This document shows positions 15,001-62,659 of a DNA stretch of 64,000 nucleotides, piece after piece. Below the pieces are notes generated by a model, which was given only the letters and a program-made list of their open reading frames with translations, was not told the origin of the DNA and searched no databases. The stretch covers positions 81,575 to 145,574 of the forward strand of contig NIVC01001282.1 in NCBI GenBank assembly GCA_002269645.1. Direction: 5' to 3'. The translations under genes and the position numbers were made by a program. Position 1 is the stretch's first letter, and every line of letters begins with the position of its first letter. Source of the stretch: Macrostomum lignano (Eukaryota).

Positions 15001-18000
15001 GACAGGTGCATCACAGAATAAGCTTCATATCAATGAGCAGATCACAAGACTCTAAGATAAGTTTCAACAATTAGAACAGTGTCGAACGGAGACGTTCGTC
15101 AGGCTTGGCTATAAGCTACACTCGTGGAACCCATCGATGCTGGAGGCAGAGGCTGCTTACGTTTTGTTACCGCGGAAGCAGTACTCCTGTAGTTTAATTG
15201 CCGCATCGCAACAATAAAAAGTTTCCACGATCTCATCGAATTCATTTATCAGCAACAGTGCGACAAGTACTGGCACAATGTCCACGCCATTTCATTCATC
15301 AGCACAATGTCCACGCCATTTCATTCATCAGCACAATGTCCACGCCATTTCATTCATCAGCAACAGTGCGACAAGCACTGGCACAATGTCCACGCCATTT
15401 CATTCATCAGCAACAGTGCGACAAGCACTGGCACAATGTCCACGCCATTTCATTCATCAGCAACAGTGCGACAAGCACTGGCACAATGTCCACGCCATTT
15501 CATTCATCAGCAACAGTGCGACAAGTACTGGCACAATGTCCACGCCATTTCATACTCATCAGCAACAGTGCGACAAGTACTGGCACAATGTCCACGCCAG
15601 ATTCAACAGCCTGGACGTCTGGCTTGACGAACTCTACTCAACAGCCGAATACGAGATGCGCCTCTTCAGGCTGCAGATGGTGAGCTGAAATCTTTGCATT
15701 TTTATCGAGCGTTACCAAATATGAAACAAAAACAATCGCTTCTGCCTGGGCGTCCAGGGCGAGGACAGCAGCCAGGCCAGGATCATCAGGCAGTTCCAGT
15801 TCAAGAACTGGAGTCACTTCGACACGCCGCTGCCAACCACCGTGGTTGAAATTCGGCGTAAAGTCAACGACTGGATGCGTGGCAAGGACGCGCCCATTGT
15901 GGTGCACTGCAGGTGCGGCCATTTTTTACCGCAGCTCGTCTTCATTTAATCAACGCACTTGCTCAGGGGCTTCAAACTAGTTAATTACAGTTTCTTCTTG
16001 TCAAAACATTTTTTTATGTTTTTGCCTGTCTTGTCTCAGCCTCTCAAGCGTGCGCCGAATGGTTGATCCGAGTTTATTCTTTGTCTTGTTGGCTTCGATT
16101 CCTCACGCCTTAGAGAGGCCCGGCAGTTAATTCGCAAATCCAAAGGGCTGGAAAGAGATTAGCCTACCCTTGCAGGGTAATCCTTTCTAAGACAAGGACA
16201 TTTAATCAGAAGGCTTCCATGCAGTTAATCAATGTAGTCGAAACAACTTATCATCAATTTTATCCTTCAACACTCTAGAATAGACTGCATAGATCATATT
16301 TGCTCAAAAAATCAGATGTCCATATATGGAAGTGCTTGTCCATGTTTAAGTTTTTAGTTTTAGGTTCTAGCTGGGGTAATTGAGGGTGTGTGTGGCGACC
16401 CCCGAGTCCTTTGACTGAACAGCCGTTCGCAGCCTTCAGATGCACCTCGCAATAGCTGGGGCTGAGCTGTCGGTTGCACATCTGCCTATTAGGGCAGGTG
16501 TAATAAATTATTATCATTATTATTAACAATCAAACAATCTTTGATGGTTTCACACTATCCACGTGAAACTATAGGGCCGCCATCGTTACATGTCCATCGT
16601 TGCATAAACAATAAATTTCGCAGCGACGGGGCCGGCCGCACGGGCACGTACATCTGCATCGACATCGAGATCAGCAAGGTGGAGAACGGCAAGCCAGTTG
16701 ACATTCTGCAGCAGACGCTGGCTCTGCGCAAAGCCCGATCAGGACTGGTTGGCAACATGCACCAATATCGCTTCATCTACGAGACAATCTGCAGCTTCAT
16801 CACCTGCCGGCCAACCACAATTAAAGCGTTTGAGTTTGCTCAACTGGTGGAGCGGATGTCGTCGGATGCGGCCGCAGCATCGTCGACTAACGCCGCAATA
16901 ATTTCGGCTAAGAAGAAAGCGGCAAAATTCACAGTAAGTTTGGATTCGTGCCTGCGTCTTTTCATAATCAAGGGCGAATAATCAAGAACGAGTCCCAGAT
17001 TATTGCAACTTATTACTACTGTTACTACGAATATTTTTGTTTGTTGTAACTGAACGGACTTATGCAGTTACAAATAGCCTAAGGGTACTTTCCATCAAAG
17101 TCAACGCATCGATTCGAAGTGCTTGACATTCAAGAGTCTTGATAAGGCCAGTAAATATAATACTACAGATTTCCTGGAAACAACCATTCAATTTTGCGAG
17201 ATCTTGTAATAATCTTCCATGTGTAATAAACCACTGAAACGAGGAGATACTCTATGGCAAAATCTCCTCGGCTTCGTCGTTTTTTTGTTGGTGGCGAATG
17301 CGGCGACTTGGATCGCGACATTCTGCTCGACGACGACGACGAAGCCTCGGAGATTCTGCATAGAGTATCTCCTCGTTTCAGTGGTTTATTACACATGGAA
17401 TTGTGGAATTTTTGTGCTAAAACCTCTGCTACATGGCAGGGGAGGGGCTGATGAATTCTAGAATTCTAAAAGGACCACGAAGGGGCCGCGTGATTTTATG
17501 GCTGATGCAGATGTCTGCTTGGATTCTAAGATAGAATGTCGGGAAACCTGGCCGCTCTCTTATCTCTGCTTAAAACCAGGGATTAACCCATTTTCTTCTG
17601 TGTCTCCTCACTCATCCGCCTACTTCCGCACTGCCAACTCGCAGCAGAACGGCTTCCAACTGGAGTTCGCCAATTTGACGGCCATCGTGAAGTCGCTCAG
17701 CGTCGGGGAGTGCGCCGGCGGGCATCGGGCCGAGAATCGGTGGAAAAGCCGGGACGTCATGGTGCAGCCGCGTCAGAGTCTTTAAATTGTTGCGCGCGGG
17801 TTGCCGGGCTTAAAGAGGCGGGCGGTGAGGGTGATCAGTTAGGCTGTGTCTGCGATGAGTTAGAGCTGGGTCTGGTAAGGTGCAAATTAAGCTAAGGTGT
17901 ACCAAATGAGTCTGTCTATAAAATTGTAAAATTGGTCAAAAGGCCAGACTTCAAACAAGTAAAAATTGAGCAATTTCGGAGCAAACACTAACCATGGATA

Positions 18001-24095: not shown

Positions 24096-24763
<668 letters not shown>

Positions 24764-35192: not shown

Positions 35193-36301
35193 TCAGCCAA
35201 CCGTGTATTTGTTCTTACATGACCACAATAAATAGGTGAGCACATATTAGAACCAGCAAGTATTCGTGGCAACAACTTATAATTAAGATTGTTGCAAACT
35301 AAACAACACGTGTTTCAACAAGTCCTCTTCTATGAGGGGGGGGGGGGTTCGTTGCCCCGCGATTATAATTTCTGCTTTCGCAGACCCCTGGGCAAGAGCG
35401 AGTGAATTCAACATTAAGCTTGAATGCTTGTAACTTGAATAACCTCGGAGAGAGTTGAATGCGGACTGCGCAAGCAAAGCAAATTAAGTTGGAAGAGCAA
35501 AGAGCTGCTCAGTAGGCAGACGGCGAGAGAGTGACGGGCTGGCTACGCCGGGCGGCTGGCGGCCGAAGGAAAAAGCAGCGCGCCTCAATGTACATTGCTT
35601 TCCACAAGCCTTCCTCTCCCCTCCATGCTGAAGTCCCTTCACAAGCGGAAAGTACATTCATTCGTCTTATTTGACAGATTCCCACTGGCTCCTGTCTGCT
35701 CTGTGTCCCAAGCTAGGGAAGAAGCTTCCCCTTTTTTTGCTCCAATCCTTTCCCACGGCTCCCAACCCGCCCCTCAGTCTGCAGGTCGCGTCCGCCTTCC
35801 CTTAGCCTGTCTCTATTCTGAATGGCCCGGTCGACACAGCTTTTTCAACACAGGGCTTGGTTTGGGTTTGTCGCCAGCTTGAGGGTGAGAGATGGGAGAG
35901 AGAGAGAGAGTGGAGGGAGAGTATAAAGTACGCTCCCTCTATCCACCCAGCCAAAATAGCATGTGATCCCCCTGCAGCCCGCACCCCAAATCGTCGGGCA
36001 CGAGTATAGAGCGCTCTAATTTTCCAGAACATACCAAGCAGTAGGATAATATACTTTTTTACTGTTTTCGATTTCTATTCAACGCACAAGAAGGTTTCTG
36101 TCTTCGTCAACTCGCTGCACTTCGTTCGCCTCGACGAGAAACAGAGTGATACAGACAGAGCAGAGCGCCCTTCAAGTTTTCATTGGCCACGCGCCCGCAC
36201 ACACTAAGCCAGGCTTCAGCCAGTTTAAAGGCTGGACAGTGGAGCCTAGAATTCCGGCGCGCAAAATAATACAGTTATTCGTTGGACGACTCTTCGCCGC
36301 A

Positions 36302-46723
<10,422 letters not shown>

Positions 46724-48889: not shown

Positions 48890-58223
<9,334 letters not shown>

Positions 58224-60510: not shown

Positions 60511-61056
60511 TCAAGAGTCTTCTATCTGAAGGAAGGCGAACTCTTCCTTATTTTCATGGTGCTTGAGCACTCTAGGGTACTTGGGTGCGGTGGTGTAGGC
60601 GCTCCATCTCTGCGCTTTCGCATTGCCGCACTTCTCCTTCTTCTCGCCTGGGCAGGGCTCGTTGCACTCGCTGTCGTCCCTCTTCTCGCTGGTCTCCAGG
60701 AACGACTCGCAGAAGCACTTGTTTCCGATGAGGCCCATGTACTTGCTGCCAGTGGGATAGCAGTGATCGTTGCAGAGGGACAGACGGATGTTCTGGTACT
60801 CCATGGCAGTGTGGTGCGCTTCGCCCGGATAGCAGCCTTGGTACTCTACGATCATTTTATTCTTTGGCGGACCAGTGAAGAATGTTTTTATCTCTGAAAG
60901 GAAGTCACGATTAGGTCGATTTTTATCTTGAATGTTGGCGGAACTATGTTTTGCGGTGAATTACAGAACTCATAATTACTCACTTTTAGGACATCCTTCG
61001 ACAGATATGAACATCGCACCTAGGCAGATCAGAAGAGCTGACGCGGTAAATTGCAT
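60511..61056 (-). CDS. Secreted single-WSC-domain protein, copy 1 (151 aa)
   Basis: complement join(60984..61056, 60511..60893); signal peptide MQFTASALLICLGAMFISVEG; WSC pattern YQGC...LCNDHC...YMGLIGNKCFC...ECNEPCPG...KCG with 8 Cys; 90-nt phase-1 intron. Confidence 0.9.
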
Positions 61057-61373
61057 CCTTGTCGATCCGTGATTCTGAAAGTACTTAATTGCGGTGCCAA
61101 ATTTGATGCCCTTTTAGAGCTCCAGAAATACTGATTTGCCTGAATTTTGCAAAGTTTGTTTTGGCAGGGGCGAGCGAGCAAGGCTGTGGACATAGAGTGT
61201 CCCAGAGGGCACAGCGCCTGAGGCTATGTCTATGATAATGCGAACAGGCCCGCGTAGCTGAGCTGATAATCGGTTGAGATTGTTTGAAGTCGTGCGTATA
61301 TTGCCGCCGCTTAAGTCGTTCTTGTCTAATAACACGAGTTGAGACAAAGCTTTGAATTCAACGCATACCGGAG

Positions 61374-61862
61374 ATGAAGTTCGTTTCGTCAGTCCTGTTG
61401 ATTTGCTTCTGCAGTGCGATGATCTGCTCCGTCGAAGGATGTCCAAAAAGTAAGCACCCGGGATTTATCTAACCTGATCTATCTAACTTTTTCTGCATTG
61501 ATTTGCACCTAAGCCGTTTCCATCCAACTTATTTTTTAGAGATTAAAACATTCTTCGCCGGTCCAGATAAAGTCGAAATAAAAGTAGAGTACAAGGGCTG
61601 CTTTCCTGGAAAGGCGCACCACACTGCCATGGAGTACCCGAACATTCGCATAGCACTCTGCAACGATCACTGCTATCCCACTGGCAGCAAGTACATGGGC
61701 CTCATCGGAAACAAGTGCTTCTGCGAGTCGTTCCTGGAGAATAGCGAGAAGAAGGACGACAACGAGTGCAGCGTACCGTGTCCCGGCGACGAGAAGGAGA
61801 AGTGCGGCGATGAGAAGGCGGAGCGATGGAGCGCCTACACCACTGGGCCCAAGTATCCGTGA
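61374..61862 (+). CDS. Secreted single-WSC-domain protein, copy 2 (132 aa)
   Basis: join(61374..61449, 61540..61862); signal peptide MKFVSSVLLICFCSAMICSVEG; same 8-Cys WSC pattern; 90-nt phase-1 intron. Confidence 0.92.
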
Positions 61863-62659
61863 AGTACTTCCTTCCTACTTCCATGAAGACAAACTCGGTG
61901 ATAACCACTACAATTAGCTTTTTGTAAGCAGACTTTAGAGCTCTTTGTTACAATGTAAGCATGCGAACATTTCTTTCAACGGCCTGAAAAAGCAGATCTT
62001 TGCTTTTGCTTTCGACTCCCGTACGCATTAGCTGAAATTCTGTTAAACAGAATTACTCAGTCAAGGTTTTACAGTAAACTGCCTTTGTACATGTACATGT
62101 ACAAGTATCGTAATAGTAAATAAAATAAGAATGCGAAGAGAGGGACAATAATGCATATTTGCATTGACTTTTTCTTTCAATTCAAGTTAAGCAGTGGCAC
62201 GACTGAATGCACCAATCTGCTCCCTACGCCACAAACTGTTTGGCAAGAGGATTTAAAAACAACAATAAAAAGAAAATGCGTCCTCCCGGAAGGCTGAGTG
62301 AACCCCTGGGGCACCGTGGGGGTCAGCGAGTAGGCGTTCGACGTTCTTGCGACGCGAGTGCGCGTTAGCATGTCCTCAATTTGTTTTCCGCACCTTCTGC
62401 CCGGTTTGCGCAGCAGTACGGCTTGGCGCGAATGATTTGGCCTGTCAGAGTCGCCGACGACATAAAGTCACTTGAACTGGTCAGAGGATGTCTCGGGGAA
62501 GTTCTGATGGGGAAATTTCTCAATGCCAATCAGGAGCTGGTGCAGGGGCCAAGAAAACCGTCGATTACATGATCTGATTGAGCAGCTTTGCAAACGCCGA
62601 AAGTAGATGCTCTTTTCTGAAATTGATGCTCTTCAAGCCTTGGTGCTCTTTGTTTTGAT

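Follow-up and report, generated by a model that had tools for sequence, protein, structure and literature searches.

At the end of Macrostomum lignano contig NIVC01001282.1 (contig 1282), we identified two divergently transcribed genes, A and B, which are probably two of the three members (A, B, and B') of a family of secreted single-WSC proteins that evolve in concert and serve as extracellular binding modules. Both lie in the 64,000-nt stretch of DNA analyzed here (the window), which is the end of this contig, and both have existing GenBank annotations, BOX15_Mlig006630g1 for gene A and Mlig029139g1 (BOX15_Mlig029139g1) for gene B. The two GenBank models were built from RNA-seq assemblies as separate models on opposite strands, and the protein translated here from gene B was 100% identical to that of BOX15_Mlig029139g1. 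A tblastn search detected no further WSC copies within the window besides A and B. In window coordinates, the locus is laid out as follows.

60511-61056, minus strand: gene A, 151 aa in the window contig
60984-61056, minus strand: gene A exon 1, with the ATG and a 21-residue signal-peptide-like N-terminus (MQFTASALLICLGAMFISVEG), then CPK; ends in phase 1
60894-60983, minus strand: gene A intron, 90 nt, GTGAGT..TTTCAG, phase 1
60511-60893, minus strand: coding part of gene A exon 2, N-terminal arm and WSC domain, followed in the window contig by a 20-aa tail
61057-61373, no strand: spacer, 317 bp between the start codons
61374-61862, plus strand: gene B, 132 aa
61374-61449, plus strand: gene B exon 1, with the ATG and a 22-residue signal-peptide-like N-terminus (MKFVSSVLLICFCSAMICSVEG), then CPK; ends in phase 1
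61450-61539, plus strand: gene B intron, 90 nt, GTAAGC..TTTTAG, phase 1
61540-61862, plus strand: coding part of gene B exon 2, N-terminal arm and WSC domain, TGA stop
61863-62127, plus strand: 3' flank of B, inside the segment duplicated between B and B', approximately 81% identical

The coordinates and translations bore out the first-pass annotation of this DNA, which had described two inverted, head-to-head paralogs of two exons each, with 90-nt phase-1 introns and start codons 317 bp apart. Its remark that the intron layout is the same holds for length and phase in the window, but the equal length is coincidental, as the introns measure 97 nt (A) and 94 nt (B) on the homeologous contig 19. 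Alignment of the A intron with the B intron was not possible, and the likeness between the two genes is bound to the exons, with inverted-repeat arms at 60575-60857 and 61576-61858 (87%). Downstream of gene B, an AATAAA at 62119-62124 likely marks the end of the 3' UTR as a putative poly(A) signal.

The A/B pair, including its 317-bp spacer, recurs on two other contigs, 746 and 19. Contigs 1282 and 746 are 98 to 100% identical in this region, and contig 19 is a homeologous, 5%-diverged contig. On each of contigs 746 and 19, a third copy, B', a segmental copy of approximately 1 kb of B, lies 5 to 9 kb from the pair, and the B' of contig 1282 falls past the contig end, outside the window. The pair that had been noted earlier is therefore repeated on three contigs, but it belongs to a trio and is not the whole family.

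A copy number of this kind could in principle stem from assembly duplication, from a decaying pseudogene pair, or from exons of a larger gene, a reading that we consider highly improbable. It draws on the redundancy of the assembly at contigs 1282 and 746, on a fused 195-aa model in an older assembly, and on the frameshift of gene A at its last codon in the window. The last 20 residues of A are present solely in the window contig, where the C run at 60575-60577 lacks one base relative to the other two A copies, so the tail results from a 1-nt homopolymer indel; on contigs 746 and 19 the A ORF ends in KYP-TAG after 131 aa, with the TAG corresponding to window positions 60572-60574. Against this reading, 72 of 393 coding positions distinguish A from B, and their introns and flanks are unrelated, which rules them out as assembly duplicates of each other; the pair is also present on the 5%-diverged homeologous contig. 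No ORF is broken among the eight copies over the three contigs, and all evolve under purifying selection (dN/dS well below 1). Each gene has its own signal-peptide start and stop codon, and the B/B' duplication unit is compact, at approximately 1 kb. Given the separate opposite-strand models derived from RNA-seq and the eight intact copies under purifying selection, A and B are not pieces of a longer multi-domain transcript.

Both proteins exceeded the curated gathering cut-off of the Pfam WSC profile PF01822 (27.8 bits), with 42.3 bits (E 9e-11) for A and 44.5 bits (E 2e-11) for B over profile positions 1-81 of 82, in line with their earlier identification as WSC-only proteins. The N-termini of A and B, in which a hydrophobic core is followed by V at -3, G at -1, and then a cysteine, look like signal peptides when judged by rule. 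Along with the WSC match and the separate RNA-seq gene models, this agrees with the earlier description of small, stand-alone, secreted proteins. The mature proteins would be approximately 12.4 kDa, with nine cysteines each, and no N-glycosylation sites were found in A or B. Eight of the cysteines (mature C24, C44, C48, C63, C65, C80, C84, and C92) were invariant in 33 aligned domains, namely A and B plus 31 foreign WSC domains, and they presumably form the WSC disulfide set, with a predicted pairing into four disulfides. The ninth is mature residue 1, which opens the arm motif CPKKIKTFF and is conserved in A and B; it would be lost if the signal peptide were cleaved one residue later, or it may simply be free. 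A and B differ at 23 of 110 mature residues, and 10 of these differences alter charge, which matches the previous observation that charged surface residues differ between the two. The pI is 7.0 for B, 8.4 for the 110-aa mature A ending in KYP (the form on the other two contigs), and 7.7 for the 130-aa mature A of the window.

The AlphaFold model had a mean pLDDT of 81, with low confidence (pLDDT 56 to 66) in the 20-residue arm that precedes the WSC domain in exon 2. Foldseek returned seven matches at E ≤ 0.001, all of them WSC structures (7PZ2, Kremen 5FWS-5FWV, and 9N3U), and PAN/Apple domains appeared only after these, with E near 1. The predicted structure fits the WSC fold, with a PAN/Apple-like core and a long C-terminal loop around it. 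In this loop, the CGG motif, whose importance in WSC domains has been described previously (PMC9024836), reads CGD in B and CGN in A; the C and first G are invariant, and the second G position also varies in a few foreign domains (CGS, CGA, CGK, and CGN). The first WSC loop is approximately six residues shorter in A and B than usual.

The best structural match was Saccharomyces cerevisiae Wsc1 (7PZ2; TM 0.70 to 0.79, E 3e-7), which was also the best PDB sequence match and has the same eight-cysteine pattern. Wsc1, however, is anchored in the membrane and senses cell-wall stress, with a Ser/Thr-rich stalk and a transmembrane helix, whereas A and B are free, predicted-secreted domains with 23 to 24% identity to it, CGD or CGN in place of its CGG, and a shorter first loop. 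The WSC domain of Kremen1 (5FWS), an animal domain, has the same fold as the A/B model (TMq 0.67, rmsd 2.0, E 2e-5), but it lies between the Kringle and CUB domains of a receptor and contacts Dickkopf, while A and B have no other domains. The glyoxal oxidase WSC domain 9N3U was matched by the model as well. The closest foreign sequences by score were secreted bivalve multi-WSC proteins (Magallana gigas K1QKY9, named "putative fungistatic metabolite", Mactra, and Mytilus) and fungal WSC lectins, at approximately 30% identity per domain; these carry 3 to 22 tandem WSC domains, compared to one in A and B. A 114-aa Ostrea edulis protein, LOC125674894, shares with A and B a signal-like hydrophobic N-terminus and a single WSC domain, although it is an uncharacterized model, approximately 28% identical and lacking the CPKKIKTFF arm. 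This oyster RefSeq model, with one WSC domain only, softens the earlier generalization that animal WSC domains are usually part of larger proteins.

Whether such a domain binds glycans or proteins bears on what A and B might do. The WSC literature records both glycan-binding and protein-binding domains, and Serendipita indica WSC3 (SiWSC3) is a beta-glucan-binding lectin. A and B could contact proteins in the manner of Kremen and Dickkopf, as a secreted ligand, a decoy, or a matrix component and not as lectins, which we consider somewhat unlikely. In the Foldseek comparison, the match to the Kremen WSC fold nearly equals that to Wsc1; the Wsc1 structure paper describes no apparent glycan pocket and emphasizes contacts between proteins; and a single domain does not provide the multivalency that, as the same paper suggests, the binding of long-chain glucan may require. 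On the other side, there is no known candidate partner protein, and in the other solved or assayed contexts that we found, WSC domains occur on carbohydrate-acting enzymes or as a glucan-binding lectin. Since the Wsc1 domain has no apparent glycan pocket and the Kremen WSC domain binds protein, glycan binding is no safe default for WSC domains, and the label "lectin" is not assured for A and B.

The only sequences that matched A and B beyond the approximately 30 to 40% identity of foreign WSC domains were these M. lignano proteins themselves. The search covered 1.84 billion representatives and 5.8 billion clusters, from databases in which other Macrostomum protein sets are absent, and within that scope the family appears so far to be confined to M. 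lignano. For other WSC paralogs in M. lignano, a word-indexed search returned A and B types only, a profile search returned short foreign proteins only, and the best 150 matches of an exhaustive search were all multi-domain foreign proteins.

The clearest evidence that the three genes evolve in concert came from the comparison of B and B'. From ATG to stop, intron included, they are identical at 488 of 489 nt (89 of 90 in the intron on contig 746), whereas their flanks show 65 differences over 372 nt and are about 80 to 85% alike (Fisher P 3e-24 compared to 1/489 in the gene). The contig 19 copies of B and B' have in common a 94-nt intron of their own and five substitutions. Near-identity through the gene and its intron, set against the diverged flanks, indicates that B and B' are homogenized by gene conversion, separately in each subgenome. 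Independent duplication of B' in each subgenome was rejected as an origin of these copies: the B/B' flanks are 15 to 20% diverged, compared to 4 to 9% between subgenomes, and the B' copies share derived changes.

A similar signal was found between A and B, in an identical core of 28 codons (LCNDHCYPTGSKYMGLIGNKCFCESFLE) that belongs to a perfect inverted repeat with the following arms.

60693-60777, minus strand: A arm of the 85-nt perfect inverted repeat, codons LCNDHC..SFLE; putative gene-conversion tract
61656-61740, plus strand: B arm of the 85-nt perfect inverted repeat

The core had been called near-identical; it proved fully identical, and the identity is not confined to the protein but extends over 85 nt of DNA. 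There were 0 differences at its 84 positions, compared to a pS of 0.56 outside it; zero synonymous difference in the core has a P of 2.5e-6, and none of 100,000 permutations gave the observed run. As the identity is at the DNA level, it points to a conversion tract and not to selection on the protein alone. Codon bias was also considered for the identical core and set aside, as the codons of the tract are mixed and the pS outside the core already includes any bias. Silent and intronic identity, sharp boundaries, and a closer likeness of B to B' within than between genome copies, by which conversion is recognized, were all present.

Outside the core, A and B had a pN of 0.15 and a pS of 0.56 (P 1e-10), and 2 nonsynonymous changes were counted between subgenomes compared to 10 synonymous ones. 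These substitution patterns indicate that A and B are under purifying selection outside the conversion tracts. Synonymous divergence between A and B outside the core was approximately 0.8 to 1.5 depending on the region, and introns, spacer, and UTRs could not be aligned. A and B are an old inverted duplicate, and B' is a younger copy of B.

We then considered the spacer, from which the first-pass annotation had derived a shared promoter. Three elements lie within it.

61196-61373, plus strand: B-proximal upstream block, also present on the B' copies at approximately 85% identity, with a TATA-like GTATATTG at approximately 61294-61301
61233-61238, plus strand: first TGATAA, present at all three A/B loci; the two B' copies have TGGTAA
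61264-61269, plus strand: second TGATAA, present on contigs 1282 and 746 and in the two B' copies; contig 19 has TGAAAA

The earlier proposal of a co-regulated pair of lectins for pattern recognition in gut or mucus, read here as one bidirectional, GATA-driven promoter controlling both genes, is one that we consider unlikely. The genes do stand head-to-head, the spacer has a length of exactly 317 bp on each of the three contigs, with approximately 94% identity to that of homeologous contig 19, and the distance on all three contigs, as measured on start codons, fits the <1 kb between start sites that defines bidirectional pairs. This conservation, however, is no higher than that of adjacent noncoding DNA between subgenomes. 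No motifs common to the A-proximal and B-proximal halves were found above chance (the shared k-mers were self-palindromes and one 7-mer), and B', which has approximately 180 bp of the B-proximal half but neither the A-proximal half nor an A partner, still has an intact ORF. The head-to-head arrangement thus stands, while for the "shared promoter" the 317-bp spacing is the sole ground; the block at 61196-61373 is likely an autonomous promoter of B. Both TGATAA sites are present where they had been reported, on the plus strand, with two in 317 bp compared to the approximately 0.12 predicted from the window density, and at least one TGATAA lies upstream of every B-type copy. As a regulatory signal the pair is weakly supported: neither site is kept across all copies, the motif was chosen post hoc, and across the entire window it is less frequent than expected (25 found compared to approximately 40 expected). 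The beta-glucan-binding lectins among fungal WSC proteins favor a lectin role, but a gut, mucus, or epidermal site is conjectural, and the prostate gland is where many small WSC transcripts of this species have been documented.

A different site of action, compatible with the same molecular picture, is the seminal fluid, with A, B, and B' made in prostate gland cells and passed on at mating; we regard this as possible, but tentative. The prostate-limited transcripts of M. lignano are dominated by WSC proteins (Weber et al. 2018); several of those given there are 486 to 660 nt long with one WSC-sized alignment, and they match the oyster "putative fungistatic metabolite" kind of protein, of which one ranked second in our A/B search. 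Another study lists a prostate transcript, RNA815_80.4, with two WSC domains (Arbore et al. 2015), and a resemblance to WSCD2 is reported for Mlig-pro46 and "several other" candidate seminal-fluid proteins (Patlar et al. 2019). The prostate-limited WSC transcripts (Mlig-pro4, 5, 11, 38, 46, 49, 63, and others; Weber 2018, Patlar 2019, Arbore 2015) share with A and B the species, a small predicted-secreted product, one or two WSC domains, and similar oyster and fungal best matches. Their gene identifiers differ from those of A and B, and the likeness is one of description. Among Mlig-pro1-76, the identifiers of A, B, and B' are absent from the 18 knocked-down candidates that carry Mlig_3_7 identifiers (the other 58 have RNA815 identifiers without sequence). 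The five Mlig gene identifiers (Mlig006630, Mlig029139, Mlig023815, Mlig027703, and Mlig034511) were mentioned neither in the literature full texts searched nor in the supplements of PMC5816591, PMC7336406, PMC5946080, PMC12896417, and PMC5730564. Strong purifying selection is unlike what is usually reported for seminal-fluid proteins, although compatible with such a role, and the prior drawn from the WSC-rich prostate set is a soft one.

Under the favored reading of a concertedly evolving family of extracellular binding modules, each gene is an independent two-exon unit, in which a signal-peptide exon is joined across a phase-1 intron to an exon for the arm and one WSC domain. The 317-bp spacer would most likely comprise two core promoters approximately 150 to 200 bp apart. 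The mature proteins would leave the secretory cell and bind a glycan or glycoprotein extracellularly, and the ninth cysteine could link them by disulfides into homo- or heterodimers, which would give the multivalency that lectins with several WSC domains owe to their tandem arrangement. A more specific and speculative proposal, which we consider quite improbable, is that the compact spacer drives A and B together and that their N-terminal cysteines link the two products into a covalent heterodimer, a two-headed binder with one basic and one neutral subunit. Recurrent conversion would then preserve identity in the cores that face the ligand as the charged residues around them diverge, and the targets of the dimer could be sperm, eggs, or microbes, either at mating or on mucosa.

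A, B, and B' would make up an ordinary lineage-specific family, and nothing in them overturns present understanding. The locus is a clean, small case of mosaic gene conversion among inverted and direct paralogs in a genome that was duplicated recently. WSC modules are extracellular and widespread, but poorly understood, and a flatworm that is open to transgenesis and RNAi and has minimal, one-domain secreted versions would make it easier to ask what the domain binds in animals. If expressed in the prostate, these genes would extend the WSC-rich seminal-fluid repertoire of a model of sexual selection.

Two small secreted single-WSC-domain genes, A on the minus strand and B on the plus strand, are arranged head to head in the window. 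Splicing of the evident exons re-derived the exons, the 90-nt phase-1 introns and the 317-bp spacer, and the coordinates and anatomy proposed in the first-pass annotation were correct. Its observation is confirmed and sharpened; its interpretation, a co-regulated lectin pair on a shared promoter with a possible gut or mucus role, is only partly supported. The gene features are as follows.

60984-61056, minus strand: gene A exon 1
60894-60983, minus strand: gene A intron, 90 nt, GTGAGT..TTTCAG
60511-60893, minus strand: gene A exon 2 (A product, 151 aa)
61057-61373: spacer between the A and B start codons, 317 bp
61374-61449, plus strand: gene B exon 1
61450-61539, plus strand: gene B intron, 90 nt, GTAAGC..TTTTAG
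61540-61862, plus strand: gene B exon 2 (B product, 132 aa)

The two introns, each of phase 1, lie at the equivalent position, just past CPK, and tblastn detected no additional WSC copies in the 64-kb window. Protein A is BOX15_Mlig006630g1, protein B is 100% identical to BOX15_Mlig029139g1, and UniProt labels both proteins "WSC domain-containing protein." Over its final 12.6 kb the window matches the end of contig NIVC01001282.1 without a difference. Since the GenBank gene models of GCA_002269645.1 were built from RNA-seq-based transcript assemblies (PMC5730564), A and B are transcript-supported as separate units. An older M. lignano assembly holds a fused model with 1.5 copies of protein B (UniRef100_A0A1I8H3X3; P0153, 195 aa), which is probably a mis-assembly or mis-annotation.

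The head-to-head arrangement recurs, its spacer again exactly 317 bp, on the near-identical contig 746 (pair 98-100% identical to the window) and on contig 19, from the other subgenome, whose gene region is ~95% identical, consistent with the recent genome duplication published for M. lignano. Both contigs carry a third copy, B', which encodes the same protein as the respective contig's B; on contig 746 it lies 8.5 kb past B with its orientation unchanged, and on contig 19 it is inverted, at 5.2 kb from B. B' is out of view in the window because contig NIVC01001282.1 stops 2.1 kb after B. The neighbors are a GRK-like kinase gene on the A side and, past B', a 441-aa TIR_2-domain gene (B' and the TIR gene, outside the window: L003 18986-19474; L001 3459-3951; L002 14888-17301). 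All gene copies on the three contigs are intact (8/8). The C run at 60575-60577 in gene A has three Cs in the window versus four on contigs 746 and 19, and this one-base shortening removes the TAG after ...KYP and extends A by 20 residues (affected site 60572-60577). The indel, which falls in a homopolymer in an assembly made from long reads, is the sole difference between the window and contig 746 across ~880 bp; the short run is either an assembly error of the long-read homopolymer type or a minor allele.

Minisatellites are very abundant in the window. The GRK-like kinase gene (about 50555-58223, minus strand; RGS and protein kinase domains) has introns full of them, with units of 35 nt (52972-53707), 22 nt (54154-54913), and 24 nt (56142-56754). 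A 39-nt unit forms a 3-kb array of 78 copies with 96% matches (40235-43270) and a second array nearby (38721-39370), and there are (TCTA)167 at 24096-24763 and (AGAC)107 at 43786-44214. On the plus strand, an unbroken 490-aa ORF at 36146-37618 codes for a protein with leucine-rich repeats (LRR_8, E 1.5e-30), and an ORF at 16541-16981 aligns with the C-terminal portion of a protein-tyrosine-phosphatase catalytic domain (E 6e-12) and is presumably a single exon of a larger gene.

The WSC identity of both proteins held up: each spans the Pfam PF01822 profile and scores 42-44 bits, where the curated cut-off is 27.8. In an alignment of A and B with 31 foreign WSC domains, the eight family cysteines and the following glycine were invariant, while A and B had a first loop ~6 residues shorter than the consensus, YMG for the consensus YAG, and CGD (B) or CGN (A) for CGG. 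An AlphaFold model built with this alignment as input (mean pLDDT 81) had seven significant PDB neighbors, every one a WSC structure: yeast Wsc1 (7PZ2; E 3e-7, TM 0.70-0.79), Kremen in four crystal forms, and a glyoxal oxidase WSC module. By a rule-based call, both N-termini look like signal peptides (a short n-region, a ~14-residue hydrophobic core, then a cysteine preceded by G at -1 and V at -3), and no second hydrophobic segment or N-glycosylation site was found in either protein. Mature B and mature A in its KYP form, ending at the normal TAG, have 110 residues (12.4-12.5 kDa), with a pI of 7.0 for B versus 8.4 for A; the window's mature A with its 20-aa tail has 130 residues and a pI of 7.7. 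Between the 110-residue forms there are 23 differences, 10 of which alter charge, in line with the differing charged residues described earlier. The mature proteins have nine cysteines apiece; the ninth is mature residue 1, in a 20-residue arm that opens with the motif CPKKIKTFF, which A and B have in common, and that is disordered in the model.

An exhaustive search of 1.84 billion representatives returned no close relatives outside M. lignano. The best foreign matches were large proteins in which 3-22 WSC domains stand in tandem (~30% identity per domain) from a diplonemid, bivalves, and fungi. A 114-aa oyster model has a hydrophobic signal-like N-terminus and one WSC domain, as A and B do, so that their WSC-only architecture is not unique. 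A and B are lineage-specific members of a known domain family, previously annotated and uncharacterized. Glucan-binding WSC modules include SiWSC3 and that of a Trichoderma exoglucanase, the Kremen module binds a protein, Dickkopf, and the Wsc1 structure is reported to lack an apparent glycan pocket; multivalency was suggested as possibly important for binding of long-chain glucan (PMC9024836). The mechanism we prefer is that A and B act as secreted binding proteins, which could gain valency through disulfide dimerization via the ninth cysteine.

No expression records for the A, B, or B' gene ids were found in the M. lignano literature searched. WSC-type best matches were reported for ~26 of 76 prostate-limited seminal-fluid-candidate transcripts, several of them short and single-domain (PMC5977470), a prostate transcript with two WSC domains had been described earlier (PMC4490696), and Mlig-pro46 and others resemble WSCD2 (PMC6953679). 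This richness makes it possible that A, B, and B' are prostate-made seminal-fluid proteins, although none of them is among the 18 candidates for which current gene ids exist, and we hold this only tentatively. The remaining probability, apart from a gut or mucus role, goes to other secretory cells.

The two TGATAA sites noted earlier are present in the spacer (61233 and 61264). Two per 317 bp exceeds the local-density expectation, but the motif was picked after being seen; across the window TGATAA is not enriched (25 observed versus ~40 expected). The first site is TGGTAA in both B' copies, and the second is TGAAAA on contig 19. The M. lignano literature lowers the prior for gut or mucus, and a GATA-driven role there is improbable. 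Between subgenomes the spacer is about as conserved as flanking non-coding DNA, which makes its conservation a poor guide to function. The 178 bp nearest B (61196-61373) moved along with B' and is still ~85% identical; the A-proximal half was not carried. B thus probably has a self-sufficient proximal promoter, and A and B form a bidirectional pair by positional definition alone. No mirrored motifs beyond chance were found between the spacer halves. A 7-bp inverted repeat near the spacer center (GACATAG..CTATGTC, 61190-61196 and 61225-61231), not above chance, is retained on contig 19 and missing upstream of B'.

B and B' belong to one duplicated segment, which reaches about 180 bp upstream and about 265 bp downstream of the coding region. 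On contig 746 the ATG-to-stop stretch, with its intron, shows 1 difference in 489 positions, versus 65 in 372 aligned positions of the adjoining flanks (Fisher P 3e-24), and on contig 19 both carry a 94-nt intron particular to that contig and five substitutions absent from contig 746. As the B/B' flanks diverge by 15-20%, compared with 4-9% for B between subgenomes, the duplication predates the subgenome split; derived changes are common to both B' copies. The pattern is one of gene conversion, with B and B' homogenized independently in each genome copy.

The "near-identical core" noted earlier for A and B was found to be an 85-nt exon stretch without DNA differences (60693-60777 and 61656-61740; codons LCNDHC..SFLE), for which gene conversion would account. 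Outside it, A and B differ at 56% of synonymous and 15% of non-synonymous sites; the probability of zero synonymous change in the tract was 2.5e-6, and so long a run occurred in 0 of 100,000 permutations. A on contig 19 has one later change within the tract. Neither introns nor spacer nor UTRs could be aligned between A and B, indicating that the inverted duplication is old and the conversion patch recent. With a dN/dS of ~0.15-0.2 outside the tract (P 1e-10, non-synonymous changes fewer than expected) and 2 non-synonymous versus 10 synonymous changes between subgenomes (A and B pooled), A and B are maintained genes, not decaying duplicates. The A/B/B' family is a neat case of mosaic gene conversion.
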